Of a stretch of 64,000 nucleotides of DNA, positions 5,477 to 46,000 are shown piece after piece. The stretch's first letter is position 1. The number at the start of each line of letters is the position of its first letter. This DNA comes from Macrostomum hystrix (lineage: Eukaryota; Animalia; Platyhelminthes), in contig CATNEN010000035.1 of the NCBI GenBank assembly GCA_950097015.1, positions 1,538,099 to 1,602,098 of the forward strand. The letters are read 5' to 3'. The position numbers and the translations under genes are program-made. The notes beneath the pieces are model-generated. The model was not told the origin of the DNA and ran no database searches. It was given only the letters and a program-made list of their open reading frames with translations.

Positions 5477-6088
5477 ATGAGCATGAAGCTACTGGTTTTG
5501 CTGTTGGTCCTAGGTCTGTCGACCTTATCTGTTGGTGAGTTAAGATACGAATATGAGTAATTACTCAGCATCAGGTAAACAACCCAGCTCAGCGATCCTG
5601 TGTTTTTCACTTCAGGCGCTTGTCCAACGCTCTACCTGACTAACAATGGCAGCGGAGTCATGTCGTCAAGTCACGGCTTTCCACGCTTCTGCGGTGTTGA
5701 GTATTGCCACCGCTTGGAATGCAACTACGAACTGTTAGCTGGAGGCAACAACACGGGACACGGGCTCAACTTCCAGTTCGACTTCTTTGACACCGAGTCG
5801 AGCTTTGACTACCTGCAGCTGCAGTTCACGGACAAGCAGGGACGCATTGTGAATGGAACCTTCTGGGGTAGCATTGGCCCGTTGGTAGGACACCTGGACG
5901 CGGCCCGCGGCTCCCCAGTGAGGCTTCGATGGGTCACCGACGCCACAGTGAACAGCTTCGGCTTCGTCATGAGATTCCAAGCCACACCGCCACCACCAAC
6001 TCGATGGTACAGGCTGGGCGGCCTGCTGGCTGTTGGAGAGGCCGGCGTCCAGGGCTCAATCAGTGTTGTGCCGGCCAGGAGAAAGTGA
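5477..6088 (+). CDS. Secreted single-CUB-domain protein, paralog 1 (exons 5477-5534 and 5616-6088)
   Basis: Signal peptide MSMKLLVLLLVLGLSTLSV, 81-nt phase-1 GT-AG intron. CUB hallmarks: C-P-T, G-x-x-S-S..FP..Y..C-x-Y, F-D-T-E..D-Y-L, and LRWVTDATVNSFGF. Confidence 0.88.
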
Positions 6089-6235
6089 ACTGAGCCTTAA
6101 GACTTAACTAACAATAAATATGGACTTGACTGAACTCACAATGAGCCCACTATAATGCTTCGCAAATAGGATTCGATGAGTTTCAACATTTATTAATTTA
6201 CTAATGATAAGAGGGAGTTTTTAACTAAATCTGTT

Positions 6236-6385
6236 CTCTGACCGAGAAATCGGGATTTCGACTCTCAGTCGAAGGGAAACAGTTTGTCTTTGAGCAAAGC
6301 AATTCACAGCTGATTGCTTCAGCTCAGCCCACTAGAAATTTTGGCGGGTGTTACGGCCTCCCAAGTCCACGGACGGAACAGCTGT
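6236..6385 (+). mobile_element. tRNA-derived SINE, degenerate copy 2 (opposite orientation)
   Basis: The head TCTGACCGAGAAATCGGGATTTCGACTCTCAG resembles the 56-bp unit at 49689. The tail CCAAGTCCACGGACGGAACAGC matches the tail of the other SINE copies. Confidence 0.55.
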
Positions 6386-6402
6386 ACACAGCATTTAGAC
6401 AA

Positions 6403-6439
6403 TTTTCACTTCAGGCGCTCTACCTGACTAACAATGGCA
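6403..6439 (+). other. Relic duplicate of the CUB1 splice acceptor and exon start with an internal 11-nt deletion
   Basis: TTTTCACTTCAGGCGCT-CTACCTGACTAACAATGGCA is identical to 5604-5650 minus TGTCCAACGCT, with CGCT microhomology at the deletion. Confidence 0.85.
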
Positions 6440-6727
6440 AAACGGACAAGTTGCACAATTTCTGCGACTGGCTGTACATCCTGGCCCTAACTGGGGGCCT
6501 CATCGCTATAGCCGCGGGTCAATTGACGACAAAGTGAGGCATTAGCACACGTAAAATGTTTAAATGTGCACCAGTGAGTGCAGTGACTGTACGTACATGG
6601 ACATACATGTATTGCGTGCATCGATGCGTAATGTTTTGATGTATCAAAAATTGCTTTCCCAATGCAGTTTCGTAAATCGAAACCCAGAAATGCGTCAGAG
6701 CTTATTGTCATTGTGAAATGCGAGTTT

Positions 6728-7789
6728 ACACTCAGCAACAGTCAAAAGTTCCACCCTATCACGCCTAGTCAGAGATAACTTCTCGCTCACAATTCAACCC
6801 GTGAGTACGCAACTACGCCGCGAGGAGGGAAGGCTGATTGAATCAATCACAAGTTTATTTTTTATGCAATATGCAGTTAGAATCGCTATGCTTAATACCG
6901 CGTGTGGGCAGAAGAGCGGCGACTCTGCGGGGCATCCCCAAGATGAGGCGGCGCAGAAAGTCCTGGGGAAGTTGCTGCCAAGCGTTTGCAATGGCGTGAC
7001 GCAGCTCCGCAACATTCTGTAGGTGCATTCTCTTTTCGAATGCTGCGCTTTTGAAAGTCCCAGACATGCTCGATTGGATTCATGTCAGGGGACCGGGAAG
7101 GCCTGCGCAGAGTGCGGATCTGTAGCTGCTCTTTCACTTGACTAATCGGCTCGATGTGGCGGCGCGTTATCATCCTGGAGAATGCAGGTGCCAACTCCTC
7201 CGAAAGCAGCGTCGGCAAACGGTAGGAACCGAGTCTGCAGAAGGTCTGCGTAGCTATTCCGTGTGGACGCGCTGCATCGCCCACTACTCTCGGCTGGCGA
7301 TGTGGGCAGGACTGAGTCGTCGAGGCCGCTTGCGCATCTTGCGAGAGCGGAGGCCGGCCTCTCGAATTCGACGTCGAACTGTCTGGGCGCTCAGGATGTT
7401 TCCTGCTCTGCTTCTCTCACCCCACATCAGACGGAGCAGGGTGGCTGGCAGGGTGGGAGTTCGCCTTACTATTCGCAGCAGACGGCAATTTGCTCTGGCT
7501 GTTGAGCCACGGAGATCAAGGCGCTGACTGCCTTTCGCAGCGTGCTCCACTGCTGCCAGTCTCACGGGACTTTGTCAGCAGTTTTCGAATTGCCACTCGC
7601 GATCTTCCAAATCTGCGAGCAACTTCGCTGATGGACACAACGACTTCCAGCATTCCAACAGCACGCAATCGTTCAGCACTAGTCATTTGCCGGACCATTT
7701 TTGAAATCGTGTGTGTGTGTGTGGATTAGACTGAAAATGTGTCCTCTTAAAGTTACGCAGGCGAACCTCCAAGGCACAGTGAGAGTGTA
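6728..7789 (-). mobile_element. Decayed Tc1/mariner transposon (transposase with frameshifts)
   Basis: N-terminal HTH RAVGMLE..SISEVARRFG, second HTH LSAQTVRRRIREAGL, the DD34E signature SPDMNPIEHVW, and C-terminal LRHAIANAWQQL..LILGMPRRVAALL. Only TA-CACTC/GAGTG-TA match at the putative ends, so the boundaries are tentative. Confidence 0.88.
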
Positions 7790-8451
7790 CACTGCCTGAC
7801 GATGAGAAAGTCAGGGCAGATGTACACACCTGTGTGAGCGAGTGCCTGCGTGTGTTATCTGTGTGCGTGTGTGCTCAGGAGTCAGCGAGATGAGCAGAAT
7901 TGCCTCCTTGCTGGCTGCGGGTCCAGTGTCACCAAGTGATGTGCCATTGCCCGCAGCCCTCCTGCAATTATTACTATTATTATATGAATCATTCGCGTAT
8001 AGATCTGGGGTACTGACTGATTCTCCGGTAGAACGAAATCGTGAAATTAGTATTTTGAAGCAAACAGGTGTCCCAAATCCAGTTTGTGGAGCAATTTCTT
8101 TATTTGATATCCATTAGCAATGACATATTCATTACCCATAATCTGTCCGCCCGATTTCAGTTAGCTAGCTAGCCAATAAATCATTTTTTAAACAGTTGTT
8201 TAAACAACTGAACAATTATTTTTAAGGCTAATGGCTATGACCAATTACAAAAAAACGCGAAATTCGAGCAGATTAGTAAAACAGGTTTGGTGATCAATTT
8301 CATTTTAAGAAATAAATCCATGTGGACAAAGGTGCAGGTGACTTTCAACTTTTTTCGAAGAACCCGTCTATATAAGTGTGGGTCGGAGAAGATTAAAATC
8401 CATTAAGGCTAACTCTTTTTTTTTTACTCAACCCGTTCAGCATCAGCGAAG

Positions 8452-9697
8452 ATGAAGCTGCTGGACATTCTGATCCTGGCCTGCCTGGCGACAGCAGTTT
8501 GCGGTAATTAGTCTCAGTTTTGCGCATCCAACGGCATAGTGCCGGGCACAAACAGGACGCACTACCCCTCACAGGTGTCCTACTCCCCTCACAGGTGTCC
8601 TACTCCCCTCACAGGTGTCCTACTCCCCTCACAGGTGTCCTACTCCCCTCACAGGTGTCCTAATCCCCTCACAGTTGTCCCAATACCTTCACAGGTGTCC
8701 TACTCCCCTCACAGGTGTCCCAATCCCTTCACAGGTGTCCTACTACCCTCACAGGTGTCCTACTCCCCTCACAGGTGTCCTACTCCCCTCAAAGGTGTTC
8801 TAGTCCCCTCACAGGTGTCCCAATACCTTCACAGGTGTCCTACTCCCCTCACAGGTGTCCCAATACCTTCACAGGTGTCCTACTACCCTCACAGGTGTCC
8901 TTCTCCCCTCACAGGTGTCCTACTCCCCTCAAAGGTGTTCTAGTCCCCTCACAGGTGTCCTACTCCCCTCATAGGTTTTCTACTCCCCTCACAGGTGTCC
9001 TACTCCCCTCACAGGTGTTCTACTACCCTCACAGGTGTCCTACTCCCCTCACAGGTGTCCTACTCCCTTCACAGGTGTCCTAATCCCCTCACAGGTGTCC
9101 CAATCCCTTCACAGGTGTCCTACTCCCCTCACAGGTGTCCTACTCCCCTCACAGTAATTGAAAGTGAAGTAAGCAGTAATCGCGCAGGGTTTCTGGTGCA
9201 GTGCAACCCACCCACATTGCTTCCAGGCAATTGCCCCACTCTATACATCTCGCGCAGTTCGAGTTTCTCGGGCGCCCTTTCGTCGGAGCAAAGCTATCCG
9301 CACAGGTGCAACAACTCGTACAGTCACAACCTGAGGTGCAACTACGAACTGGTCCCGGCCCGAGACAACCTGGGAGCCGGAGTGAACTTCGTCCTTCATT
9401 ACTTCAATACAGAGATTGGCTACGACTTTGTCCTGCTAGATTTCACAGACGAGTCTGGCTACAGCGTTACAGCCAAATTCTCTGGCAGCGTGGGCCAATA
9501 CAGCGGCAAATTGCTAACCAAGCCATTCACTCCGATAAGGCTTTCCTGGATCACCGACCATTCGCGTTGATAACTATGGCTTCCTAGTCCGCTACTATGT
9601 TGTACCAGCCATCAGATACCGCCTGGGCGGAACCGTCGACGTTTCGCAAGACGGAGTTCGCGGCTCCTTCGATGTTCAGCGGATCTTGAAGAAGTGA
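8452..9697 (+). CDS. Secreted single-CUB-domain protein, paralog 2 (exons 8452-8503 and 9227-9697), with a +1 frameshift at about 9565
   Basis: Signal MKLLDILILACLATAVC, phase-1 intron, then GNCPTLY..FNTEIGYDF..LSWITDHS. Removing one base at 9565 restores VDNYGFLVRY..RYRLGGTVDVSQDGVRGSFDVQRILKK*, which is colinear with paralogs 1 and 3. Confidence 0.82.
8564..9153. repeat. 20-bp minisatellite (TACTCCCCTCACAGGTGTCC)n in the CUB2 intron
   Basis: About 29 units visible directly. Confidence 0.95.
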
Positions 9698-9959
9698 AAC
9701 CGGTTTGAACCAGTTGACACTTCCTATAGTGGCAATACTAAATATACATTCGCTTATCTGTGACAGCGTGGACCACACAAGCTTAATTAAAATAGCTTTT
9801 GTTATAACGGAATTACTGATTTTCAAAAATTTGCCGAAAATTTCATTGATGAGAATCATTAAACAGACGACATTTATATTCCTATGCACGTCGGCTGGGC
9901 CAGATGTGCCGCCGACAGCACAGAGGTAGGTATTGCGTGGCGCATCTGAAGGCTGCGTA

Positions 9960-10140
9960 CGGCTGTTCAGTCCATGGACTGGGGGGACGCCACACCCACC
10001 TCATTCACCCCAGCTAATGCTGGTACCCATTTTACCGCTTGGTGAACTGAATCAATGCTAAAGCACACAAATTGTTCCAGTGGAGTCGGGAATCGAACCC
10101 CGACCTTCAAGGTCGTGAAACCGACGCTCTAATCACTAAC
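9960..10140 (-). mobile_element. tRNA-derived SINE, copy 3
   Basis: On the minus strand: tRNA-like head AGAGCGTCGGTTTCACGACCTTGAAGGTCGGGGTTCGATTCCCGAC (B-box GGTTCGATTCC), then GGTAAAATGGGTACC, then the GTCCATGGACTGAACAGC tail. Confidence 0.8.
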
Positions 10141-10429
10141 TTCAAGGCCATTATGTAAAACCAGCGTACTTATTATTAAACTTAAATGAAACATTAGCAA
10201 AATTCTCTGCAAATCACTGACAATTATCCAAATCCAAACCCTATATGTGATGAAGAATTGCTTATCTAGCTTCTATTGTCTTCAAGTGTGTACTAAAAGT
10301 ACACATGATTTTTTACAAGGCAATGTATTTTTTCTGCTCCATACAAAATTACCAATATTCTTAATTCGTGTTTCAAAACTCATTTCATAACTGTCTGTGA
10401 AATCAGCATGTGTAAACACAGCCAGAATC

Positions 10430-11005
10430 TATCTAACAGCTAAGGCACTCATATTTATCATCTAGACACCCAAATCTTACAGCTACGAGTAGAAACAATT
10501 CTAAAAGCTAGAAATTCCAATCCAACAGCTAGACACTTATATCTAACATCTAGACACCCAAATCTAAACGCTAGAAATTCAAATCTAACAGCTAGACAAT
10601 CCTATCTAACAGCTAGACATTCCAATGTAACAGCTAGACACCCAAATCTAACCGCTAGAAATTCAAATCTAACAGCTAGACATTCCAATCTAACAGCTAG
10701 ACATTCCAGTCTAACAGCTAGACATTCCAGTCCAACAGCTAGACACCTAAATCTAACAGCTAGACATTCAAATCTAACAGCTAGACACTAATCTAATAGC
10801 TAGACATTCAAATCTAACAGCTAAATATTTAAATCTAACAGCTAGACACTAATCTAACAGCTAGACACTAATCTAACATCTAGACGTTCAAATCTAACAG
10901 CTAGAAATTCAAATCTAAAAGCTAGACATTCAAATCTAAAAGCTAGACATTTAAATCCAAAAGCTAGACATCAAAATCTGACAGCTAGACACCCAAATCT
11001 ACGAG
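10430..11005. repeat. Degenerate ~21-bp minisatellite (CTAACAGCTAGACATTCAAAT)n
   Basis: Directly visible tandem units. Confidence 0.9.
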
Positions 11006-11337
11006 CGCGCTATCCTAGTTAAAAATAAGTAAATAATTTGATTTTTAACTTTACTTTTACTTAACAATTTTGGTCTGGTTAAATCAACCAGTTTAGAAGT
11101 GGAAAAAGGAATTCGTTAATTGAAGATTGCCATTTGTTTAAACAAAAGTCATGCGATAAATCCTGAAACGAGTGTGTATCGTGATTTTATTTGCTTGCTT
11201 TGTTAGCCGACGCGACAGGTGAGTTTTTTAGCAGTTTTATTCCTGATAATTTGTCTATAAATAGGCTAATAGATTGACTTAAAGCACTTCAAAGCTGACC
11301 AATATTGCTGACTGTACTCAACCCAACTGTACGGAGG

Positions 11338-12276
11338 ATGAAACTCTTGAGTATTTGTTTGGCCATCTGCTTGGTCACAACTTTTACAGGTACGCACAGT
11401 TCCCTGTCTGTCAGATCCCAGTTCCCTGTCTGTCAGATCCCAGTTCCCTGTCTGTCAGATCCCAGTTCCCTGTCTGTCAGATCACAGTTCCCTGTCTGTC
11501 AGATCCCAGTTCCCTGTCTGTCAGATCCCAGTTCCCTGTCTGTCAGATCCCAGTTCCCTGTCTGTCAGATCCCAGTTCCCTGTCTGTCAGATCCCAGTTC
11601 CCTGTCTGTCAGATCCCAGTTCCCTGTCTGTCAGATCCCAACTGTCTGACAGATCCCAACTGTCTGACAGATCCTAAGTGCCTGACAGATCCCAACTGTC
11701 TGACAGATCCCAACTGTCTGACAGATCTCAACTGTCTGACAGATCCCTGATCCCTGTCTGACGCATTCCATGAAACATGTTAGCTACCGTCAAATGTGTA
11801 TTGCAGAGGGTTGCCCAACTCTGTACATGGCTGCTAACTACAGCAGTGGGATCTTGTCCTCGGACGCTAGATTCCCCAGCTACTGCAGCTTCACCTACAG
11901 CAACAACCTGAACTGCCACTACGAACTGGTTGCTGGGCGCAGCAACCAGGGCAGGGGTGTGGCCCTCCAGGTTGACTATTTCTCCACCGAGGTGAACTAC
12001 GATCGGGTCTACGTTGACTACACGAACAACCAGGGCCACAATGTGTCTGGCTATTTGACTGGCTTCATTGGCAGGTACAGTACTGTACTACCAGCTCTGG
12101 CTGGGACTCCAATCAGGCTTCGTTGGCTCACTGATGGCTCCGTTAGCAGCTACGGCTTCCAGCTGAGGTACCAGGTGGTCCCCAGACCACGCCGCTTCAG
12201 GCTGGGTGGCTCCGTCGAGGTTAACGACTCCGGCGTACACGGATCAATCAGTGTTGAGCCAGAGAAGAGGAAGTGA
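11338..12276 (+). CDS. Secreted single-CUB-domain protein, paralog 3 (exons 11338-11389 and 11807-12276)
   Basis: Signal MKLLSICLAICLVTTFT, phase-1 GT..TTGCAG intron, intact exon EGCPTLY..FSTEVNYDR..LRWLTDGSVSSYGF..RRFRLGGSVEVNDSGVHGSISVEPEKRK*. Confidence 0.9.
11397..11750. repeat. Compound minisatellite in the CUB3 intron: 22-bp (CAGTTCCCTGTCTGTCAGATCC)n then 18-bp (CAACTGTCTGACAGATCC)n
   Basis: Directly visible, and begins 7 nt after the donor. Confidence 0.93.
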
Positions 12277-12968
12277 TAGGTCACGAACAATGGCTTTGAA
12301 AGTTATAAATAAATCATAGACTTATATTAAACTTTGCAACAATGGCACACAACTTGTACAAAAATAGCCTAAGTTCTTCAGTGTCTTTTTCTAATTTATT
12401 GCTCGTTATCGTAAAAACTCGTAAATCGTTAAAAAGCTAGTCTATTTTAATCGTTACTTCAAATTCGCTACACGTTCAACTGGCTGCTTAAAGAACTTGC
12501 TACTTAGAGAACTCGTTCGCTAGATTTCGTTACTTGAAAAACTCGCTCAAGAAAGAACTTGTTACAAAAAGAAGCGCGTTGCATGACGAACTCGATAAAC
12601 AAAGAACCTCTTTACATAAATAAATTGTTTCTTAAACAAACAAATCGTTACTAGAAGGACAAGAATAAAGAAAACTGAAACTCACAAAGTTTGTGTGGCT
12701 AAAGAAAAGAAAACTGAAAATATGAGTTATAGGTCAACTGTTGGAACTAGACGTTTGAAAATAGCGGGACCTGTACCGCCATCTGTTTCCAGCTCTCTAG
12801 GGATTCGGTAATTACTGGAGAAATACCAGGCAGCTTGGAAATTGTGTGCCAGTTGACTAAAATTGAAACTCAGAAGTGAAAGTGTGGGAAAAATCTGTTG
12901 GGAAATAGACGAGTTACGAGTCCGACGAATATTATTCGTATTTTATTCGCTCTGGTTTACGCTCAAGC

Positions 12969-13639: not shown

Positions 13640-16226
13640 ATGTTCAGCAAGGCTCCTGTATTGTTCATCCTGGTGCTGCTGACTGTCACAGCTCTGTTGG
13701 CGGGCGCCGAGGGCGACAAGGGAGACAAGGGCGGCAAGGAGCACCACAAGGACCCCAGAGTCTACGACGCAAAGCCGTCGGACGCCGAGCATGAAGACGA
13801 TGACGACGATGATAGTGACAGCGGAAGAGACCATCACGACGATGACAAACATCACGAAGATGGTGAAGATGATGCCGACCATCATGACCCGAAATATGAT
13901 CACGAGTCTTTTCTAGGTGAGTCAATTTCTACTCTGCAGCTGTAAAAATTCTAAAGAGAGACTGCCTGTCCTGTGCTAATAGGTTGTGGTCTGTTCAGTA
14001 GGTTGTGGTCTGTTCAGTAGGTTGTGGTCTGTTCAGTAGGTTGTGGTCTGTTCAGTAGGTTGTGGTCTGTTCAGTAGGTTGTGGTCTGTTCAGTAGGTTG
14101 TGGTCTGTTCAGTAGGTTGTGGTCTGTTCAGTAGGTTGTGGTCTGTTCAGCAGGTTGGGTTCCTGTAGAGCTCGTTTTCGTAGACTTAGATTTTGGCTAG
14201 GTCAGCCGTCAAATTTGTATTGATGATAGAATGGTGATGCTCGCTGGTGACCTGTGACAGGACGCGAGGAGTCGCACAAGTTCGACGAGATGTCCCCGGA
14301 GGAGTCCAAGGAGAAGCTGGCCGCCCTCGTCGCCAAGATCGACACCAACAATGACACGAAGGTGACACCCGAGGAGCTGCAGTCCTGGCTGGCTCTAGTA
14401 GCTAAGGGCGAGAGGACCCGCGCCTCCGAGAGCCGCTTCCACAACCTGAAGGCCACAGTCAACGCCAAGGATCTGGACGCTCCACTGACGCTGTGAGTCA
14501 GCTTGTTGTCTTTCCTTGTGTAAATATGGTAGCATGTTGACTAGTGCGTTTGTCTGCTAAAAGCTTTCAAAGTGAAATTCAATTTGTACACAAGCTCACA
14601 GCTCACGCATTTACTGCGCTTAACAATCGAAAGAACACGGTGGTATTTCAAATACTCATTGCCTTCTTCACGCTCAAAAACCGAATGACCCATTTTCGTG
14701 AAAGTCCACCATATGGACCAAAATTTCCCGCCCTTTTCGATACCATATGAATCCATTTTGGGTTCAATAATCTGAGTCCATCTGTCGAAAGAACTTCGAG
14801 AAATGCTTCACTGAAGGCTGAGATGATTCAGATAGATGTGGTCTCAGGTGCAGCGCCTGATTGTCGTAAAGGGGTATACTGAATGCTCAAGAACATAAGT
14901 CAGAATCGTCCAAGATCTCAACGTGCAGGAGGGGCGGCGACTTGATTATTGTTTCAGAAGGTGCGCTAAAAGGTAAATTAGCAATCGAACCACCCTCCAA
15001 ACACCCGCGCAGTGAAGAGTACAAGCAGGCTATTCACCACGAGATCATCGGCGACGAGCCCACTGACAAGAGCGCCCAGGAGACCTACAACACACAGATG
15101 GTGCGCGACCAGGCCCGGTGGCTGAAGGCCGACGCCGACGGTGACAAGCAGCTCAACAAGACCGAGTTCGCCGACTTCCTTCACCCCGAGGAGGCGCCCA
15201 GCATGAAGGACATTGTCATCCAGGAGACCATGATGAACACAGACAAGAACAAGGACGGCAAGATCGACCTGAACGAGTTCATGAAGGACCTGCATCCGGA
15301 GTATGAAAACGACGTCAAGAACAAGAAAAAGCTGCCCGACTGGGTCGAGGCCGAGGAGAAGCAGTTCAAGGTGCGGCATTGAACTTTCTCCAACCTTTCT
15401 ATTGGAGGGAGAACTTTCTCCCCCACAGAACTCAATGCATTAAATGCGTTTCTATTGCTGCCATTGCTTTAGGAAAAGCTGGACATTAACAAGGATGGCT
15501 CGCTTGACCCCAACGAGGTTTACAAGTGGATCGTGCCGGAGGACTTTGACCACTCGCAACGGGTTAGTCAGTTGTTCTACCCAATTCCTGTTCTAACCCA
15601 ACACCTATCTACCCCAACACCTGTTCTACCCAATTCCTGTTCTACCCTATCACCTGTTCTACCCCAACACCTGATCTACCCCAACCTCTGCTCTACTCCA
15701 ACCTCTGCTCTACCCCAACTTCTGCTCTGCCCCAACTTCTGCTCTATCCCAACCTCTGTTCTACTCCAACCTCTGTTCTATCCCAACCTCTGTTCTACCC
15801 CAACCTCTGTTCTATCACAACCTCTGTTCTACTCCAACCTCTGTTCTATCCCAACCTCTGTCCTATCACAACCTCTGTTCTATCCCAACCTCTGTTCTAT
15901 CCCAACCTCTGTTCTATCACAACCTCTGTTCTATCCCAACTTCTGCTGTACCCTAACCCGTGTTCTACCCCAAGCATTTCTACCTCAACATATGTTCTAC
16001 CCCAACCGTTCTTCCCTAACGCCAAGTTTTTAAGCACGATTCAAATGAAAAACCGTGAGTAAATAATTCAAAAAAAAAATTCCAGGAAACCAAACACCTG
16101 TTCAAGTTGGCCGACGAAAACAAGGACAACGCGCTGACCAAGGACGAAATCCTGAAGAAATGGGAGACCTTTGTTGGTCATCAGGCCACTAACTATGGCA
16201 ACTTCGGCTCTCACGATGAACTCTAA
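13640..16226 (+). CDS. CALU: Calumenin/reticulocalbin (CREC family) ER-lumen EF-hand protein; exons 13640-13916, 14261-14492, 15013-15370, 15473-15562 and 16086-16226
   Basis: Signal peptide, YDHESFLG motif, EF-hands DTNNDTKVTPEE, DADGDKQLNKTE (followed by FLHPEE), DKNKDGKIDLNE, DINKDGSLDPNE and DENKDNALTKDE, then ATNYG..HDEL*. All intron phases are consistent. Confidence 0.93.
13979..14157. repeat. 19-bp minisatellite (AGGTTGTGGTCTGTTCAGT)n in calumenin intron 1
   Basis: About 9 near-perfect units. Confidence 0.95.
15570..16010 (+). repeat. Degenerate 17-bp minisatellite (CCAACCTCTGTTCTATC)n in calumenin intron 4
   Basis: Directly visible. It is the reverse complement of the array at 16689-17463. 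Confidence 0.9.
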
Positions 16227-31585: not shown

Positions 31586-34330
31586 TTAGGTGAAGGCACC
31601 AATGTCCGCGCCACCCCAAGGCCTGTACGGCTTCTGTGGAGTCAGCGGATGCTGCTGATAATGATGATGCTGAGGCTGCTGCTGATGATGCTGCTGATCG
31701 TGCTGCTGGAACTGATGATAGTGCTGCTGCTGCTGCTGCTGCTGCTGATCGTGCTGCGACGCCAGACTGTGATGCTGCTGCTGCTGTTGCTGATAGTAAG
31801 CGGCAGTCGGGTTTGGATGCTGGCAGCTCTGCAGCAGGCCGCTAAATGAGCTTGGATGGTAATAGCCCGCGTTGCCATGACTACCGGCTGCACCGGTCGG
31901 AACGAAGGCGCCCATGGAACCGCCACCGCCGACGACACCGCCGCGTGGCTCAGATTCAAAGGCGGCCGCTGCGGCTGCTGCTGCGGCTGCTGCAGCGTAG
32001 CCAGCCGATAGGCCCGTCGGCGGAGCGGCTGCCGCCGCTGTCTGCCACGCGCCAGCTGACGGTGGCGGCAGCGGCGGCAGCGATGGAGGCGACGGTGGCG
32101 ACACGGGCAGCAGGCCGGCTCCTGGCGGGCGCGTAACGGACGTTGACGCGGATCGTTGAGCGCTGCACCACTGCAGGTGAGTCAGAAGGCGGCTGCGCAT
32201 CGAGTCCCAGTGCTGCTCGCCAGCCAGCAGTGAGGAGCCGTTGTCGCCGCAGCCGAGCAGAAATCTGTGCACTTCGGCAGCGCACTCGCGGAATCCCATA
32301 TTTCTGGCGTCGATAGCAACCGCCGCGGCGTCCGTTGGCGAACCGACGCCGCCGCCCTTCTGCTGCTGATGCTGCAGTGAGCGCAGGTAATCCACCGTCA
32401 TCTGCAGAATCTCGGCCTTCTCAAGCTTGGCCGAGCCCTGTTTCTCGAATGCGCTCGGCACCAGGCGCTTCAGCTCGCTCAGGCTGCTGTTGATTCGATC
32501 TCGACGACGCTTCTCGATCATCTGCGTGCAGCGCGGAATTGGGATTTTCCAGTGAGGACAGACTCAGGAGCTTGGTGGGAATAGGGGAACAGATGAGACA
32601 CGAGAGAGGATGAGACACGAGAGAGATGAGACACGAGAGAGATGAGACACGAGAGGGATGAGACACGGGAGGGATGAGACACGAGAGAGATGAGACACGA
32701 GAGAGATGAGACACGAGAGAGATGAGACACGAGAGAGATGAGACACGAGAGGGATGAGACACGGGAGGGATGAGACACGAGAGAGATGAGACACGAGAGA
32801 GATGAGACACGAGAGAGATGAGACGAGAGAGAGATGAGACACAAGAGAGATGAGACACGAGAGAGATGAGACACGAGAGGGATGAGACACGGAAGAGATG
32901 AGACACGGAAGAGATGAAACACGAGAGAGATGAGAAACGAGAGAGATGAGACACGAGAGAGATGAGACACGAGAGAGATGAGACACGGGAGGGATGAGAC
33001 ACGAGAGAGATGAGACATGAGAGAGATGAGACACGAGAGAGATGAGACAAGAGAGAGATGAGACACGGGAGGGATGAGACACGAGAGAGATGAGACATGA
33101 GAGAGATGAGACACGGGAGAGATGAGACACGAGAGAGATGAGACACGAGAGAGATGAGACGAGAGAGAGATGAGACACGAGAGAGATGAGACACGAGAGA
33201 GATGAGACACGAGAGAGATGAGACACGAGAGAGATGAGACACGGAAGAGATGAGACACGGAAGAGATGAAACACGAGAGAGATGAGAAACGAGAGAGATG
33301 AGACACGAGAGAGATGAGACAAGAGAGAGATGAGACACGGGAGGGATGAGACACGAGAGAGATGAGACATGAGAGAGATGAGACACGAGAGAGATGAGAC
33401 ATGAGAGAGATGAGACACGAGAGAGATGAGACACGAGAGAGATGAGACAAGAGAGAGATGAGACACGGGAGGGATGAGACACGAGAGAGATGAGACATGA
33501 GAGAGATGAGACACGAGAGAGATGAGACACGAGAGAGATGAGACACGGGAGGGATGAGACACGGGAGGGATGAGACACGAGAGAGATGAGACACGAGAGA
33601 GATGAGACATGAGAGAGATGAGACACGAGAGAAATGGGACACGACAGAGATGAGAAACGAGAGAGATGAGACACGGAAGAGATGAGACACAGAAGAGATG
33701 AGACACGGAAGAGATGAGACACGGGAGAGATGAGACACGGGAGAGATGAGACACGGGAGAGATGAAACACGAGAGAGATGAGACACGGAAGAGATGAGAC
33801 ACGAGAGAGATAAGACACGGAAGAGATGAGACACGGAAGAAATGAGACACGGGAGAGATGAGACACGGGAGAGATGAGACACGGGAGAGATGAAACACGA
33901 GAGAGATGAGACACGGAAGAGATGAGACACGAGAGAAGACGAGACAGGGGAGAGATGAGACAGGGGAGAGATGAGACACGAGAGAGATGAGACACGAGAG
34001 AGATGAGACATGGGAAAAATAAGACACTAGCCGATCTATAGCAGAGTAACGACTATGCAAAAAGTGTGGCAAAGGCCTGAACTCACCCCTCGTCTTCTCT
34101 TCCTGTTTGCACTTTTAACATTCTGGCCCGGATATCTGCAATTGAAAAAGAAGGCGCAATCAATAATCAATGTACTGAGCTGTGATCTAGGCTGAAATAA
34201 AGTACAGAAGCACGGTACACAATGCAGTGCAGAGTTAACAACAGTACACTTACTGCATTGCCATTTCATCCGAGTCTGACTCACTGCTGTCGCAGCTTCC
34301 ACTCTGCTTCATCTGCATGTGCAGCTTCAT
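31586..34330 (-). CDS. HEY: Hey (hairy/E(spl)-related with YRPW motif) bHLH-Orange repressor, 353 aa; exons 34330-34254, 34135-34087 and 32521-31586
   Basis: N-terminal [11 protein letters not shown], basic region RKRRRG|[46 protein letters not shown], Orange domain [15 protein letters not shown]-terminal [15 protein letters not shown]. Splice sites and phases are consistent. Confidence 0.95.
32590..34015. repeat. 16-bp minisatellite (GAGAGATGAGACACGA)n in Hey intron 2
   Basis: About 88 units. It explains three long spurious minus-strand ORFs. Confidence 0.96.
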
Positions 34331-37039: not shown

Positions 37040-40000
37040 GGCAGAGGTAGAGAGGTGAAGAGAAGGACGTAGAGGTAGAAAGGTATAATGAGAGGGAGAG
37101 AGGTAGAGTGAGTGTATAGAGAGTTAGAGTGAGAGGAAGAGAGTTAGAATGAGTGTATAGAGAGTTAGAGTGAGAAGAAGAGAGTTAGAATGAGAGGAAG
37201 AGAGTTAGAATGAGAGGAAGAGAGTTAGAGTGAGAGGAAGAGAGGTAGAGTGAGAGGAAGAGAGTTAGAGTGAGAGGAAGAGAGGTAGAGTGAGAGGGAG
37301 ATAGTTAGAGTGAGAGGAAGAGAGGTAGAGTGAGAGGACGAGAGGTAGAATGAGAGGAAGAGAGTTAGAGTGAGAGGAAGAGAGTTAGAGTCAGAGGAAG
37401 AGAGTTAGAGTGAGTGTATAGAGAGTTAGAGTGAGAAGAAGAGAGTTAGAATGAGAGGAAGAGAGTTAGAATGAGAGGAAGAGAGTTAGAGTGAGAGGAA
37501 GAGAGGTAGAGTGAGAGGAAGAGAGTTAGAATGAGAGGAAGAGAGTTAGAATGAGAGGAAGAGAGTTAGAGTGAGAGGAAGAGAGTTAGAATGAGAGGAA
37601 GAGAGTTAGAATGAGAGGAAGAGAGTTAGAGTGAGAGGAAGAGAGGTAGAGTGAGAGGGAGATAGTTAGAGTGAGAGGACGAGAGGTAGAATGAGAGGAA
37701 GAGAGTTAGAGTGAGAGGAAGAGAGTTAGAGTGAGAGGAAGACAGCTAGAATGAGAAGAAGAGAGTTAGAGTGAGAGGGAGAGAGTTAGAGTGAGAGGAA
37801 GAGAGGTAGAGTGAGAGGGAGATAGTTAGAGTGAGAGGAAGAGAGGTAGAGTGAGAGGAAGAGAGTTAGAGTGAGAGGAAGACAGCTAGAATGAGAGGAA
37901 GAGAGTTAGAGTGAGAGGGAGATAGTTAGAGTGAGAGGAAGAGAGGTAGAGTGAGAGGGAGATAGTTAGAGTGAGAGGAAGAGAGGTAGAGTGAGAGGAC
38001 GAGAGGTAGAATGAGAGGAAGAGAGTTAGAGTCCGAGGAAGAGAGTTAGAGTGAGAGGAAGAGAGTTAGAGTGAGAGGAAGAGAGCTAGAATGAGAGGAA
38101 GAGAGTTAGAGTGAGTGTATAGAGAGTTAGAGTGAGAGGAAGAGAGTTAGAGTGAGAGGAAGAGAGTTAGAGTGAGAGGAAGAGAGGTAGAGCGAGAGGA
38201 AGAGAGTTAGAGTGAGAGGAAGAGAGGTAGAGCGAGAGGAAGAGAGTTAGAGTGAGAGGAAGAGAGCTAGAATGAGAGGAAGAGAGTTAGAGTGAGTGTA
38301 TAGAGAGTTAGAGTGAGAGGAAGAGAGTTAGAGTGAGAGGAAGAGAGGTAGAGTGAGAGGACGAGAGGTAGAATGAGAGGAAGAGAGTTAGAGTCAGAGG
38401 AAGAGTTTTAGAGTGAGAGGAAGAGAGTTAGAGTAAGAGGAAGAGAGCTAGAATGAGAGGAAGAGAGTTAGAGTGAGAGGAAGAGAGTTAGAGTGAGAGG
38501 AAGAGAGTTAGAGTGAGAGGAAGAGAGTTAGAGTAAGAGGAAGAGAGCTAGAATGAGAGGACGAGAGGTAGAGTGAGAGGAAGAGAGTTAGAGTCAGAGG
38601 AAGAGAGTTAGAGTGAGAGGAAGAGAGTTAGAGTGAGAGGAAGAGAGTTAGAGTCAGAGGAAGAGAGTTAGAGTGAGTGTATAGAGAGTTAGAGTGAGAA
38701 GAAGAGAGTTAGAATGAGAGGAAGAGAGTTAGAATGAGAGGAAGAGAGTTAGAGTGAGAGGACGAGAGGTAGAATGAGAGGAAGAGAGTTAGAGTGAGAG
38801 GAAGAGAGTTAGAGTCAGAGGAAGAGAGTTAGAGTGAGTGTATAGAGAGTTAGAGTGAGAAGAAGAGAGTTAGAATGAGAGGAAGAGAGTTAGAATGAGA
38901 GGAAGAGAGTTAGAGTGAGAGGAAGAGAGGTAGAGTGAGAGGAAGAGAGTTAGAATGAGAGGAAGAGAGTTAGAATGAGAGGAAGAGAGTTAGAGTGAGA
39001 GGAAGAGAGTTAGAATGAGAGGAAGAGAGTTAGAATGAGAGGAAGAGAGTTAGAGTGAGAGGAAGAGAGGTAGAGTGAGAGGGAGATAGTTAGAGTGAGA
39101 GGACGAGAGGTAGAATGAGAGGAAGAGAGTTAGAGTGAGAGGAAGAGAGTTAGAGTGAGAGGAAGACAGCTAGAATGAGAAGAAGAGAGTTAGAGTGAGA
39201 GGGAGAGAGTTAGAGTGAGAGGAAGAGAGGTAGAGTGAGAGGGAGATAGTTAGAGTGAGAGGAAGAGAGGTAGAGTGAGAGGACGAGAGGTAGAATGAGA
39301 GGAAGAGAGTTAGAGTGAGAGGAAGAGAGTTAGAGTGAGAGGAAGACAGCTAGAATGAGAGGAAGAGAGTTAGAGTGAGAGGGAGATAGTTAGAGTGAGA
39401 GGAAGAGAGGTAGAGTGAGAGGGAGATAGTTAGAGTGAGAGGAAGAGAGGTAGAGTGAGAGGACGAGAGGTAGAATGAGAGGAAGAGAGTTAGAGTCCGA
39501 GGAAGAGAGTTAGAGTGAGAGGAAGAGAGTTAGAGTGAGAGGAAGAGAGCTAGAATGAGAGGAAGAGAGTTAGAGTGAGTGTATAGAGAGTTAGAGTGAG
39601 AGGAAGAGAGTTAGAGTGAGAGGAAGAGAGTTAGAGTGAGAGGAAGAGAGGTAGAGCGAGAGGAAGAGAGTTAGAGTGAGAGGAAGAGAGGTAGAGCGAG
39701 AGGAAGAGAGTTAGAGTGAGAGGAAGAGAGCTAGAATGAGAGGAAGAGAGTTAGAGTGAGTGTATAGAGAGTTAGAGTGAGAGGAAGAGAGTTAGAGTGA
39801 GAGGAAGAGAGGTAGAGTGAGAGGACGAGAGGTAGAATGAGAGGAAGAGAGTTAGAGTCAGAGGAAGAGTTTTAGAGTGAGAGGAAGAGAGTTAGAGTAA
39901 GAGGAAGAGAGCTAGAATGAGAGGAAGAGAGTTAGAGTGAGAGGAAGAGAGTTAGAGTGAGAGGAAGAGAGTTAGAGTGAGAGGAAGAGAGTTAGAGTAA

Positions 40001-41368
40001 GAGGAAGAGAGCTAGAATGAGAGGACGAGAGGTAGAATGAGAGGAAGAGAGTTAGAGTCAGAGGAAGAGAGTTAGAGTGAGAGGAAGAGAGTTAGAGTGA
40101 GAGGAAGAGAGTTAGAGTCAGAGGAAGAGAGTTAGAGTCAGAGGAAGAGAGTTAGAGTGAGAGGAAGAGAGTTAGAGTTAGAGGAAGAGAGTTAGAGTAA
40201 GAGAATGAGAGCTAGAATGAGAGGAAGAGAGTTAGAGTGAGAGGAAGAGAGTTAGAGTGAGAGGAAGAGAGTTAGAGTGAGAGGAAGAGAGTTAGAGTAA
40301 GAGGAAGAGAGCTAGAATGAGAGGAAGAGAGTTAGAGTGAGAGGAAGAGAGTTAGAGTGAGAGGAAGAGAGTTAGAGTGAGAGGAAGAGAGTTAGAGTGA
40401 GAGGAAGAGAGCTAGAATGAGAGGAAGAGAGTTAGAGTGAGAGGAAGAGAGTTAGAGTGAGAGGAAGAGAGTTAGAGTCAGTGTATAGAGAGTTAGAGTC
40501 AGAGGAAGAGAGTTAGAGTGAGTGTATAGAGAGTTAGAGTGAGAGGAAGAGAGTTAGAGTGAGAGGAAGAGAGTTAGAGTGAGAGGAAGAGAGTTAGAGT
40601 GAGAGGAAGAGAGTTAGAGTAAGAGGAAGAGAGCTAGAATGAGAGGAAGAGAGTTAGAGTGAGAGGAAGAGAGTTAGAGTGAGAGGAAGAGAGTTAGAGT
40701 GAGAGGAAGAGAGTTAGAGTGAGAGGAAGAGAGCTAGAATGAGAGGAAGAGAGTTAGAGTGAGAGGAAGAGAGTTAGAGTGAGAGGAAGAGAGTTAGAGT
40801 CAGTGTATAGAGAGTTAGAGTCAGAGGAAGAGAGTTAGAGTGAGTGTATAGAGAGTTAGAGTGAGAGGAAGAGAGTTAGAGTGAGAGGAAGAGAGTTAGA
40901 GTGAGAGGAAGAGAGTTAGAGTAAGAGGAAGAGAGCTAGAATGAGAGGAAGAGAGTTAGAGTGAGAGGAAGAGAGTTAGAGTGAGAGGAAGAGAGTTAGA
41001 GTGAGAGGAAGAGAGTTAGAGTGAGAGGAAGAGAGCTAGAATGAGAGGAAGAGAGTTAGAGTGAGAGGAAGAGAGTTAGAGTGAGAGGAAGAGAGTTAGA
41101 GTCAGTGTATAGAGAGTTAGAGTCAGAGGAAGAGAGTTAGAGTCAGTGTATAGAGAGTTAGAGTGAGAGGAAGAGAGTTAGAGTCAGAGGAAGAGAGTTA
41201 GAGTCAGTGTATAGAGAGTTAGAGTCAGAGGAAGAGAGTTAGAGTCAGTGTATAGAGAGTTAGAGTCAGTGTATAGAGAGTTAGAGTCAGAGGAAGAGAG
41301 TTAGAGTCAGTGTATAGAGAGTTAGAGTGAGAGGAAGAGAGTTAGAGTCAGTGTATAGAGAGTTAGAG
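37040..41368. repeat. 4.3-kb purine-rich 20-bp satellite (GAGAGTTAGAGTGAGAGGAA)n
   Basis: More than 200 units with variant blocks and an internal 1464-bp duplication. Confidence 0.97.
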
Positions 41369-42117
41369 TGGGACAGAGAATTAGTAGCAAACTGTACATG
41401 AGCATTGGAATGTTGGAATAAGAGGGAGCATGGCTAGCCACCAGGACCCTATACCCACAATGGGAAGGAAAGCTAGCTGTCTCCATGTGTTCCGCAGTCC
41501 TTTAGAGGGGTGTGACAAAATCGAGTCTTGCATCACTAGGCAGCTAGTTCACTTTCTCTCAGAAACTTGCAGCCACTTCAATGCGCCACTTTACATCAAC
41601 TGCTAAATTTGTATGGATGAATGTCTGTGTGTAGCCGTGTCTGTTCGACTCGACGCGTCACCATCAAATAGGAGCTCATTTGGGAGAGGCGATAAGGCCT
41701 GTCCCACTCACACGTGAGTCAACTAAGAGGCTAAGGAAATGTTCTCAAAAAGGTTGAGCTGTCGAAATCATCCACTTGCGCGAATATATATCTACTCCAC
41801 TAGAGACAGCCCATATATTGCAACTTTGAGCACAATGAAGCTCCATCAATCTTTAAGTTGAGCTGGTTAAACTCTTTATAATGATATGAGAGTTGCCAGA
41901 GGGAATTCCCACAGTTAGTGGTCCGACTTAAACTAGCTGTTAGTAACTTTTTAGACCTTCGTTTAGTCAATAGTAGCATACTACTTGTTTTAATGTTAGT
42001 AGCATTCATAGCGCATTGAACGCGATTTTTCGATGCGCAGCAGCTTTTATGCAATTTAGAGAAATTTGCGAGATTATGTTTTAAAGTGACAGTGCGGTGT
42101 TTGATGAACGTTTAAGA

Positions 42118-43087: not shown

Positions 43088-46000
43088 CTATAAGTCCATT
43101 TGTAGCCGTGGCTTTCGCTGCCTAGCCGACCGTCGTGGATTATCTGGTCCGTAGGGCGGCGGGTGTTGGACTTGGTCCGGCGCTCGCCATCCTGGAGGCC
43201 TGGGTCGAGATCCTGGATGTGCCACCGCTAGTGTGGCCGGCAGCATCAGGTGGCCGGCCGTTTCGTTTTGTTGAGTCGGCAGTGATCCTGGCTCGCTGTC
43301 TTCCGCGGACACGTGTCGCGGTTGAAGCTGGTCGAAGTGCCGTCGCCACACCGGGCCGCTTGGGACAACCTTGACGTTGACGCTGCGGCTGCCGTGCCGC
43401 TTGGTGACCACTGCCGGAACCCAGCGGCCTTCCTTCTCGCGGCGTGGTCCGTAGTAGCGAGCGTAGACCGGATCTCCGACGTTGTAGCCTTCTCGGACGC
43501 GAGACACCTTTTTCCGAGCTCTGGACTCTTCGGCCTGCTTGACTGGGCGAGATGGGCTGGAGATGGCAGCAGAGTATCAATCTGCGTCCTGATCTGCCGG
43601 CCATTTAGGAGTTCGCTCGGAGAGTAGCCGTTGACCGCAGGAGTCCGTCGGTACTGCATCAGGAACTGCTGTAGCGCCCTGGCAGGTGGCAGGCTGGATT
43701 TCTTCAGGGCCTTCTTGAAGGTCTGAACCAGTCGTTCGGCCGCTCCGTTTGTTGCAGGATGATACGGAGCTCCTGTGAGGTGCGCGATGCCGTGTTCGCG
43801 ACACCAAGCTTGAAACTCCTCAGCCATGAATGCCGCTGCATTGTCTGTGACGATGGCGTGAGGGTAGCCGAAGTGGGCGAAGTCTTCTTCCAGAAGCTCG
43901 ATCGTTGCCCGCGTTGACATGGATTGCGTCGGGTGTATGCACGGGTACTTCGAGTAGGCGTCCGTGAGCACTAGCCAGTTGGTGCCGAGGAAGTTGACTG
44001 CGTGATCCAGATGTAGGCGACTCCAAGGCTTCTCAGGCATCATCCACGGATGGACGGCGGCCTTTGGCGGATGATTTTGGTGCTCAGCACAGCTGTGGCA
44101 GCCGTGGCACAGGTGCTCGACGTCGTCGTCGATGTTCGGCCAGTAGACTGCCGATCGAGCCAGCTGCTTCATCCTCTGTATTCCAAAGTGTCCGAGGTGG
44201 AGGATTTTCAGCACCTCATTCCGGAGGTTCCGAGGAATCACAAGACGACAGCCATGCAGAAGACATCCGTTGCAGCAGGACAGCGAATCTTTGACCTTCC
44301 GCAGGCGGGCCAGCTCAGCGTCCTCGTCTCGTCCGATTGGCGGCCCAACCTTCTCGACAGTAGCGCATGGCGGTGGAGATGACTGGGTCCCTCGATGATT
44401 CCTTGGCTACGGCTGAGGCGTCAGCCGGCCGGATCTGCAGGCTCAGGACCTTGATCGCACAGACCATGTCGAAGTCGGCTGTGCTCTCCTCCCCGTCGAA
44501 GTCTAGGTCGTCTCCGACTGGCAGGCGACTCAGGGCGTCCGCATTTCCGTGACTCTTCGTCTGGCGGTACTCGATTTCGTAGGTGAAATTGTGGAGCAGG
44601 TTCGCCCAACGAGCCAGTCGGTTTGCCGCCATCACTGGTGTCTCCTTCTCGGGCCCGAATAGAGAAATCAACGGCTTATGGTCCGTGACCAGGATGAACT
44701 TGCGGTTGAACAAGTATTGGAAAAACTTCTTTAGGCCGAAGATGATTGAAAGGGCTTCCTTCTGAATCTGAGGATAGCGGCGCTGAGCATCCGTCAGAGA
44801 CTTTGAAGCGTTGGCGATCGGCCGCTCGCTACCATCCGGGTAGCGGTGGAACAGGACGGCGCCGATCCCGACGTTGGATGCGTCGCAGGAGAGCCCGAGA
44901 GGGAGGTCGGCATTGTAGTGGACCAGCACGTTGTCCGACGAGAGCTCCTCCTTGATCTGTTCGAAGGCCCGCTGCTCCGCGTCGCCCCATGTCCATGGTG
45001 CGTCCTTCCTGGTGAGTCGGTACAGCGGCTCAGAGATCGTGGCCATGCTTGGCGGCAGAAACTTTGCGTAGAACTGGACCGAGCCGAGGAATGACCGGAG
45101 GCTGGACACGTCCTTTGGTGGAGGCATTTCGCGGACAGCGTCCACCTTGGTTCCCTTGGCGATGCCTTCTTTCGACAGTACATAGCCAAGGTACTCGATG
45201 CTGGGCATGGCGAATTTGCACTTCTCCCGTCGGCAGCGAAGTCCCTTGTCAGAAAGGCGTTGGAAAAGCCGGCGTAGGTTTGCGAGATGCTCATCAGCGG
45301 TCGCGCCGCCGACCAGGTAGTCGTCCAAGTAGAAAACGACTCCGGGCAGATCACCGGCTACCATTTCCATGATGAACTGGAACTCACCCACTGCAGACTT
45401 CGGGCCGAAAGCGAGCCGCTTCTGAAGAAGCACACCCCGGTGGGTGCTCAGTGCCAGGCGCCTCTGACTCATCGGTCCCAACTCGATCTGGTTGTAGGCG
45501 TCGGCCAGATCTACCTTTGAGAAGCAGTAGCTGCCTCCCAGCTTCTGTAGCAGTTCCTCTGGGAGGGGCAGCGGGTGACGGTTGTCTTCCAGCTGCGGGT
45601 TGATAGTGCACGAGTAGTCTCCGCAGACTCGCAGTTTCGGCTGCTCTGAGCCGGTCGAGGGCTTTCGCACGGGGACCACGGGCGTCCCGTAGTCATTGAA
45701 GTCAGTAGGCTCCCAGATGCCTCTCCTGATGCCCTCGTCGTAGGCGCGCTCGAGCTCCTCGCGGATGGCGAAGGGGACAGGCCTAGCCTTCCGGAACACC
45801 GGCTTTGCATCCGGGTTAAACTGCAACTCGAGCTTGAAGTCCTTGAGGCAACCCAGCTCGTCCTTCCACAGGTCCGGGAATTCGTCGCAAAGATTTCGGC
45901 AGGCCTTTTGAAGAGCCTCGTCCGGCAGCAGGTGGTCAAACACTGCGTTGACTTCTTGAATGGCGCTGGCAGCGCCGAGCAGTTTGTCGACGGAGATTCC

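Follow-up and report, generated by a model that had tools for sequence, protein, structure and literature searches.

To our knowledge, stand-alone CUB proteins are rare outside the mammalian spermadhesins, and we know of no spermadhesin with the acidic Ca2+ triad found in other CUB domains. Spermadhesins form dimers. A different subset, the CUB domains of the PCPE-1 type, has three conserved acidic residues (PMC6372009). In PCPE-1 CUB1, Glu60 and Asp109 are Ca2+ ligands that salt-bridge the ligand lysine, and Tyr67 stabilises it (PMC6372009). Here, a window of 64,000 nucleotides (the whole stretch of DNA that was analysed) from the flatworm Macrostomum hystrix was found to hold three linked paralogs of common gene structure. 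They encode a CUB fold followed by a tail that is conserved in two species and restricted to the genus.

The three genes, designated G1, G2 and G3, are neighbours on the plus strand of the window (5477-6088, 8452-9697 and 11338-12276). Exons and splice sites were read there as expected from the original prediction of three same-strand genes with two exons each. In all of them, a signal-peptide exon with a hydrophobic, signal-like translation is followed by an intron and a single exon that carries the CUB domain and a tail of 26 residues. The intron is of phase 1 in all three genes and lies directly upstream of the conserved CPTLY, the start of the mature protein. Exon 1 of G1 (5477..5534) spans 19 codons and one further base, starting with the initiation codon and encoding the signal peptide, as read from its translation and the GT donor at 5535. 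The G1 intron, read from the sequence, is of the GT..AG type and 81 bases long (5535..5615). Exon 2 (5616..6088; Pfam CUB, E 1.9e-5; AlphaFold2) encodes the CUB domain, a Pro-rich linker, the tail (6008-6085) and the stop codon (6086-6088), and an AATAAA is present at 6113-6118. G2 has a TATA-like box (8369-8376), a signal-peptide exon (8452..8503), an intron (8504..9226) occupied by a 20-base minisatellite (8565-9154, 29.5 copies) and a second exon at 9227..9697. G3 also has a TATA-like box (11256-11263) and a signal-peptide exon (11338..11389), and its intron (11390..11806) is occupied by 22-base and 18-base minisatellites (11397-11747). The second exon of G3 (11807..12276; Pfam CUB, E 5e-6; AlphaFold2) encodes the CUB domain, a linker containing RPRR, the tail (12196-12273) and the stop codon (12274-12276), with an AATAAA at 12308-12313. 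No tRNA was found within the window using ARAGORN, and no part of it resembles human sequence.

The predicted succession of signal peptide, CUB domain and tail in each gene held for G1 and G3, but not for G2, where a frameshift splits the CUB domain from the tail. The CUB frame of G2 stops at a TGA (9568-9570), and the last CUB strand and the tail carry on in the +1 frame (9563-9694), the tail itself occupying 9617-9694 and ending at a TGA (9695-9697). One surplus base lies within about 9560-9568, between CUB and tail. Both pieces are free of other stops and retain the conserved residues of the family; G2 is either a (very) young pseudogene or the product of an assembly error or indel. For the alignment, the tree and the dN/dS estimates G2 was read through the frameshift with an X, and database searches and folding were carried out with the exon 2 sequences.

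Comparison with the Pfam CUB family (PF00431) yielded 25.4 bits for G1 and 27.2 bits for G3, both over the curated cut-off of 21.4. The CUB fragment of G2 reached 14.8 bits and remained under this cut-off because the frameshift truncates the CUB piece. In searches with Foldseek and VIA-align, the AlphaFold2 model matched the PDB folds of C1r CUB2, MASP-1/2 CUB2, PCPE-1 and neuropilin (Z 8-9), and superposition on C1r CUB2, MASP CUB2 and PCPE-1 (Z 8.2-9.0) gave an rmsd of 2.4-3.2 over 100-109 residues. An alignment of six sequences revealed cysteine C1 within CPTLY and C2 within C-x-Y-E-L, together with one additional conserved cysteine; a fourth is found in G1 and Mlig005918 only, and in most members the number of conserved cysteines is odd (three). 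Of the two canonical CUB disulfides, the second (C3-C4) is absent, with no cysteine at either position in any of the six sequences. This does not bar membership of the CUB family, because many accepted CUB domains lack one of the two disulfides. When aligned to PCPE-1 CUB1 with HMMER, the family residues Glu, Tyr/Phe/His-Asp and Thr-Asp fall on Glu60, Tyr67, Asp68 and Asp109, of which Asp68 would be the third acidic ligand. All three acidic positions of the putative Ca2+ site are kept in 6 of the 6 sequences. Judged by this alignment, the family CUB retains the Glu/Asp/Asp/Tyr signature associated with Ca2+ and lysine binding in C1r, MASP and PCPE-1.

The tail follows the pattern [YF]-R-L-G-G, a strand, a G-containing turn, G-[ST], a strand and two or three Lys/Arg at the end. 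RLGG, both later glycines and the terminal lysine are invariant across the six paralogs of the two species, and the length is constant, with no indels in any of them. Among the six sequences, the tail averages 49% pairwise identity and the CUB body 50%, and dN/dS is 0.5-0.8 in the tail (26 codons) versus 0.28-0.37 in the body. Thus, of the proposal that the tail is at least as conserved as the CUB, equal conservation stands and higher conservation does not. Scanning the 220-Mb M. hystrix genome (42 contigs) with a tail profile gave matches at the three triad loci only. A profile search from the three tails had been suggested along with the prediction; built from the three 26-residue M. hystrix tails alone, it matched three Macrostomum lignano proteins precisely at their C-termini (41.4, 30.1 and 17.7 bits). 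The tail sequences had been read correctly and do not reflect chance. As originally supposed, the tail, taken as the last 26-43 residues, corresponds to no named domain: Pfam, at E up to 1, returned no family for the G2 tail piece or past residue about 121 of G1 and G3, and in the whole-model search matches to solved folds end by model residue about 126-127, isolated low-Z rows aside.

AlphaFold2 predicted for G3 a CUB sandwich followed by a long beta-hairpin at residues 130-151 (model pLDDT 78), and for G1 a CUB and a hairpin at residues 131-152. The hairpin has a pLDDT of about 81 in both modelled paralogs, where the best of five models alone is confident and the input alignment has seven rows. 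This is in agreement with the idea that the tail forms extra beta-strands.

A search with HMMER and the family profile in 1.84 billion representative proteins gave 312 matches, of which the tail-bearing ones came from M. lignano only, in keeping with the predicted lineage-restricted secreted family. These are three paralogs annotated as "hypothetical" or "CUB domain-containing". They surfaced only with the full HMMER scan and the family profile; a word-based protein search with G3 alone gave no match. M. lignano counterparts of the triad were thus already deposited, though unnamed, and the proteins of both species constitute a genus-specific family of CUB plus hairpin. The M. lignano proteins (Mlig005918.g1, Mlig029164.g1/g2 [PAA58131.1, PAA82465.1] and Mlig018739.g2; 173-184 aa) have the same architecture as the triad, sharing the signal peptide, the CUB starting at CPTLY, the linker, the RLGG hairpin tail and the basic end, and their CUB bodies are 42-58% identical to those of G1, G2 and G3. 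As in M. hystrix, the paralogs appear to be linked, since pairs of them sit on contigs of identical size. Orthology of G1 and Mlig005918 is reasonably clear from sequence comparison (58% identity, a shared fourth cysteine and Pro-rich linker, weak tree support of 59/88). In the tree rooted on a tail-less cousin, which forms a long outgroup branch, all four inner branches are below support, and therefore G2 and G3 were not paired with individual orthologs of M. lignano. None of the four gene ids from that species is mentioned in the main texts searched or in the supplements of the Macrostomum papers examined, and the relevant matches for Macrostomum and CUB in the literature searched were adhesion papers, in which both are mentioned in passing.

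The tail-less cousin, present as Mlig002479 in M. lignano and on contig C39 near 10,479,000 in M. hystrix (the two copies being 67% identical), is likewise a secreted single-CUB protein with the CPTLY start and the acidic triad. In contrast to the triad, it ends a few residues past the last CUB strand without a hairpin, carries an extra pair of cysteines, shares only about 31-35% identity with the triad and is located on a separate contig.

How the tail arose was addressed by profile comparisons. It may be what persists of a second, otherwise lost CUB, namely its two initial strands (CGG...G-x-I). Among 29 HMMER domain alignments reaching into the tail, alignments to PCPE-1 and several multi-CUB proteins run past the CUB end into the following CUB, at its initial CGG. 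Comparison with hhalign sets the tail on the CUB N-terminus (P 0.014, probability 3%), a score reached by 4 of 200 column shuffles and by 9 of 200 shuffles that kept the GG pair. The ungapped tail profile showed no enrichment at 267 CUB starts (AUC 0.49), so that the idea of a CUB origin draws on gapped comparisons alone. Language-model look-alikes of the tail were CUB clusters, at 0.77-0.78 only, and with 10+10 residues the predicted hairpin exceeds the usual length of CUB strands 1-2. The run-on into the next CUB and the hhalign placement would also fit a functionless tail, the decaying rest of a second CUB that survives merely for its shortness. We consider this unlikely, because each of the six paralogs from the two species has a full-length tail free of indels, even with CUB bodies that are only about 50% identical, and RLGG, both later glycines and the terminal lysine have not changed. 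Moreover, the tail-less cousin demonstrates that loss is possible, yet it has not happened in the triad. That the open reading frames are nonfunctional altogether, being chance frames or dead copies, could be argued from the frameshift in G2 and from the failure to find the M. hystrix proteins in the protein collections searched. However, the exon structure is conserved, signal peptides, splice sites and poly(A) signals are present, and M. lignano has full-length orthologous gene models. In addition, dN/dS within the family is 0.34-0.39, below 0.4 at dS > 1.2, indicating purifying selection, and this explanation is accordingly highly improbable.

The tail could instead be a cleavable C-terminal peptide, for which the CUB serves as carrier or pro-domain. 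A proprotein convertase would cut after Arg or Arg-Arg before the aromatic residue, and a carboxypeptidase would trim the terminal Lys/Arg to leave a peptide of 21-23 residues. Arg immediately precedes [YF]RLGG in five of six sequences (Arg-Arg in three), the RPRR of G3 is a furin-type motif, and two or three basic residues end every one of the six. G1, however, has Trp rather than Arg before the tail start, a Gly for amidation is lacking, and the core, which alternates in the manner of a strand, is acidic to neutral and predicted to form an ordered hairpin (pLDDT about 81). As no peptide precursor with a CUB scaffold is known to us either, processing of this kind seems unlikely. We slightly favour a Macrostomum-restricted secreted family that combines a Ca2+-type CUB with a hairpin acting as second interface, the hairpin probably being derived from a lost CUB and the frameshift in G2 being either a recent lesion or an assembly indel. 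A bolder version, to which we give little credence, makes the hairpin a genus-specific assembly module whose invariant basic tip enters the Ca2+/acidic pocket of the next CUB. Head-to-tail, Ca2+-dependent polymers of the three paralogs would result, candidates for a seminal, adhesive, rhabdite or egg-shell secretion. If true, such a polymer would be a self-contained lock-and-key material made from a single CUB.

For the favoured reading, a Ca2+-type CUB with the hairpin as second interface, we envisage a small secreted protein of about 155 residues in its mature form, made with a cleavable signal peptide and composed of the CUB, a short Pro/Arg linker and the 26-residue hairpin. By analogy to CUB domains of the C1r/MASP/PCPE-1 type, the Ca2+-held acidic triad and the neighbouring aromatic residue would clamp a Lys/Arg of an extracellular partner. 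The hairpin might act by strand addition on a partner, or it might present its basic tip to another copy at the Ca2+ site, so that the three paralogs could assemble into homo- or hetero-oligomers. Members of this compact family, which is conserved across Macrostomum, join a hairpin of fixed form and basic tip to a putatively lysine-clamping CUB of the Ca2+ type. If the tail is a trimmed second CUB, it would exemplify how a fragment of a domain can be retained in the role of a new interface; for now, the family is an uncharacterised secreted one, specific to its lineage and of use for annotation. As a model in the study of seminal fluid, adhesion and regeneration, Macrostomum is amenable to RNAi, in situ hybridisation and transgenesis, and the function of the family is therefore directly testable.

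Kinship with the spermadhesins, as implied by the original prediction, was not borne out. The mammalian proteins (aSFP, PSP-I/PSP-II) resemble the triad in being small and secreted, with a signal peptide and a single CUB, but they end at the CUB. Their match to the model is that of a generic CUB fold (Z 7.3-7.8, 7-14% identity), below that of complement-type CUBs, and none was among the sequence matches to solved structures. The CUBs of C1r/C1s, MASP-1/2, PCPE-1, cubilin, neuropilin and TSG-6 differ from the triad in that they lie within multidomain proteins, possess both disulfides and lack a C-terminal hairpin. They nevertheless share with it the same fold (Z 8-9) and the Glu/Asp/Asp plus aromatic signature, which in those proteins holds Ca2+ and clamps the lysine of a ligand.

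The original prediction had placed three two-exon genes on one and the same strand, and the exons and introns of all three were located on the forward strand. G1 consists of exon 1 (5477-5534), a GT..AG intron of 81 bases and exon 2 (5616-6088), G2 of exon 1 (8452-8503), an intron of 723 bases and exon 2 (9227-9697), and G3 of exon 1 (11338-11389), an intron of 417 bases and exon 2 (11807-12276). Each exon 1 encodes 17-19 hydrophobic residues typical of a signal peptide, and all three introns are in phase 1, one residue ahead of the conserved CPTLY that starts the mature chain. Full-length M. lignano gene models are laid out identically: a signal sequence of 17-21 residues precedes CPTLY or CPTLF. 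By direct reading, TATA-like boxes lie 82-83 bases upstream of the ATG in G2 and G3, and AATAAA follows the stop by 25-32 bases in G1 and G3. It is very unlikely that these ORFs are not genes. Nearly all of the G2 and G3 introns is filled by minisatellites (8565-9154, 20-base unit, and 11397-11747, 22- and 18-base units, respectively), which are unrelated to each other.

A signal peptide, a CUB domain and a C-terminal tail had been read in each gene. This holds for G1 and G3, whereas in G2 the CUB domain and the tail lie in different frames. The CUB frame of G2 ends at a TGA (9568-9570) following "...ITDHSR", and the +1 frame (about 9563-9694) encodes the final CUB strand together with the tail. 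One extra base within approximately 9560-9568 accounts for the break; with an X placed there, the alignment has no other defect and every conserved residue is kept. The break reflects either a very recent pseudogene or an assembly indel. Since no homopolymer lies at the break and PacBio long reads with Illumina data underlie the assembly (PMC10468722), neither is favoured.

Between G1 and G2 lies a broken Tc1/mariner-type transposase (6892-7698, minus strand; HTH_Tnp_Tc3_2, E 1e-8), with a DDE_3 fragment (E 2e-5) in another frame. Minisatellites are unusually abundant across the window (47 TRF rows), one comprising 214 copies of a 20-base unit (37071-41370). A bHLH-Orange transcription factor related to Hey/HES is represented by a minus-strand exon (31586-32521; HLH, E 2e-16; Hairy_orange, E 3e-9), whose product has a tail rich in Gln and His and, close to its end, a YRPW motif. 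A Ty3/gypsy-type LTR retrotransposon (43246-47341, minus strand) has long open gag-pol frames of 1008 and 331 residues, covering zinc knuckle, protease, RT, RNase H and integrase domains. An MFS_2 (MFSD2-like) transporter is represented on the plus strand by two exons (50019-50486 and 57288-58160), and in the intron between them a 29-base minisatellite forms an array of 4 kb (52986-56960). An exon with EF-hand pairs (14942-15382, plus strand) looks, by eye, like the reticulocalbin/calumenin type.

A profile of the tails of G1-G3 matched only three places in the whole M. hystrix genome, the three genes themselves; the remaining CUB matches there lack the tail. Exon 2 products were scanned in full with HMMER against 1.84 billion representative proteins, giving 312 matches at E 0.001 or better; among the 150 listed, two carry the tail, both from M. 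lignano. Together with two further tail-bearing clusters from a profile word search, these resolve into three M. lignano paralogs, Mlig005918, Mlig029164 and Mlig018739. When a profile made solely from the 26-residue M. hystrix tails was run against proteins, as had been proposed, it scored 41.4, 30.1 and 17.7 bits at the exact M. lignano C-termini, the best score outside the family being 4.8 bits. The tail is therefore conserved independently of the CUB body. Among the six sequences, pairwise identity averages 50% for the CUB body, 49% for the tail and 37% for the linker, so that the tail is as conserved as the CUB body, but not more so. dN/dS is 0.34-0.39 between the M. hystrix paralogs (dS 1.2-1.7) and a noisy 0.5-0.8 over the 26 tail codons. 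The proposed lineage restriction was borne out, tail-bearing relatives coming from M. lignano alone among the matches listed. The 247-residue M. lignano UniRef entry A0A1I8IZE1 (P0009) is a faulty model of Mlig018739; relative to P0155, its N-terminus is spurious, it has a gap of 15 residues, and the stretch right before the tail is out of frame.

The nearest other relative, Mlig002479 of M. lignano, is a secreted single-CUB protein that shares the CPTLY start of the triad but lacks the tail. Its M. hystrix ortholog (67% identity) lies on the minus strand of contig C39 at about 10,478,938-10,479,303 (locus L013) and stops just past the last CUB strand. Other matches, among those listed, are generic multi-CUB proteins of other phyla (cubilin-like, CSMD-like, DMBT1-like), with single-domain scores of at most 37 bits. 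Because the pairs Mlig029164.g1/Mlig005918.g1 and Mlig029164.g2/Mlig018739.g2 are each reported on contigs of equal size (148,232 and 420,723 bases, respectively), the M. lignano paralogs seem to be linked too. G1 and Mlig005918 look orthologous, based on highest identity, a common fourth cysteine and Pro-rich linker, and weak tree support (59/88). At least part of the triad would thus be older than the split of the two species.

The tail runs from RLGG through an alternating strand, a Gly-containing turn, G-[ST] and a second alternating strand to a basic end, the last residue always being Lys. AlphaFold2 monomer models of the exon 2 products predict a long two-stranded hairpin here (G3, residues 130-139 and 142-151; G1, 131-140 and 143-152; pLDDT about 81, above several CUB loops), in line with the extra beta-strands envisaged originally. 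The predicted hairpin fits the tail pattern, as the alternating strands flank the Gly-containing turn. The tail has no Pfam match, and solved-fold matches all end ahead of it, at model residue 123-127, bar a few isolated low-Z rows; as supposed, it matched no named domain in these comparisons.

One possible origin of the tail is a second CUB domain, since lost, of which the trimmed first hairpin would remain. The profile alignment to PCPE-1 crosses the linker and pairs RLGG-x-[LV]-E with CGGRLE, the opening of the second PCPE-1 CUB. Domain alignments to non-family matches extend into the tail in 29 of 871 cases, many finishing at the CGG with which the following CUB begins, and a Saccoglossus cubilin-like stretch (CGG-T-L-T-I-T-E-D-G-L-H-S-V-T-I-V) closely resembles the G3 tail. 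hhalign aligned the tail to the N-terminal end of a profile from 150 unrelated CUB domains, opening a gap of four residues at the turn (P 0.014, probability 3%); this score was reached by 4 of 200 column shuffles and by 9 of 200 with the GG pair kept. An ungapped profile gave no average enrichment at CUB starts, and language-model look-alikes of the tail were CUB clusters at just 0.77-0.78, under the useful level. We regard this origin as less likely than not, a lead rather than a result.

In the CUB body, family residues land on the Ca2+ site of PCPE-1 CUB1 in the profile alignment (numbering corrected for a four-residue chain offset). The conserved Glu of F-x-T-E aligns with Glu60, an aromatic-Asp pair with Tyr67-Asp68, and the Asp of T-D-x-S-V with Asp109. 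In PCPE-1, Glu60 and Asp109 coordinate Ca2+ and form a salt bridge to the ligand lysine, which Tyr67 stabilises; three acidic residues and a tyrosine define the Ca2+-binding CUB subset (PMC6372009). Asp68 would be the third acidic ligand, and the three acidic positions are kept in all six family members. The second canonical CUB disulfide is absent from the six-sequence alignment; there are four conserved cysteines in G1 and Mlig005918, and three in most members.

We are confident that the triad comprises linked paralogs of a secreted, Macrostomum-restricted protein whose single CUB domain retains the Ca2+/lysine-clamp signature intact and whose C-terminus is conserved and predicted to form a hairpin. 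What these proteins do can be proposed only tentatively: the CUB domain may bind an extracellular partner bearing Lys or Arg in a Ca2+-dependent manner, and the hairpin may provide a further interface through which copies self-associate or a partner docks. The invariant basic tip of the hairpin is an obvious candidate to act as ligand for the acidic pocket of a second copy. Alternatively, the tail could be a functionless stub, which we consider unlikely. Basic sites flank the tail, as a cleavable C-terminal peptide would have; this reading appears slightly less likely still.

The literature searched held no mention of the M. lignano proteins, whose sequences are already present in databases as unnamed entries. 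The tail lacks a family entry; it adds a C-terminal module specific to the genus to a stand-alone CUB protein. G1 and G3 pass the Pfam CUB cut-off and are modelled as beta-sandwiches (pLDDT 75 and 78, respectively; shallow input alignments of seven rows, the confident model being only the best of five). C1r CUB2, MASP-1/2 CUB2, PCPE-1, neuropilin, Kremen and cubilin CUBs superpose on the model with Z 8-9 (rmsd 2.4-3.2 over 100-109 residues), and spermadhesins rank lower (Z 7.3-7.8, 7-14% identity).
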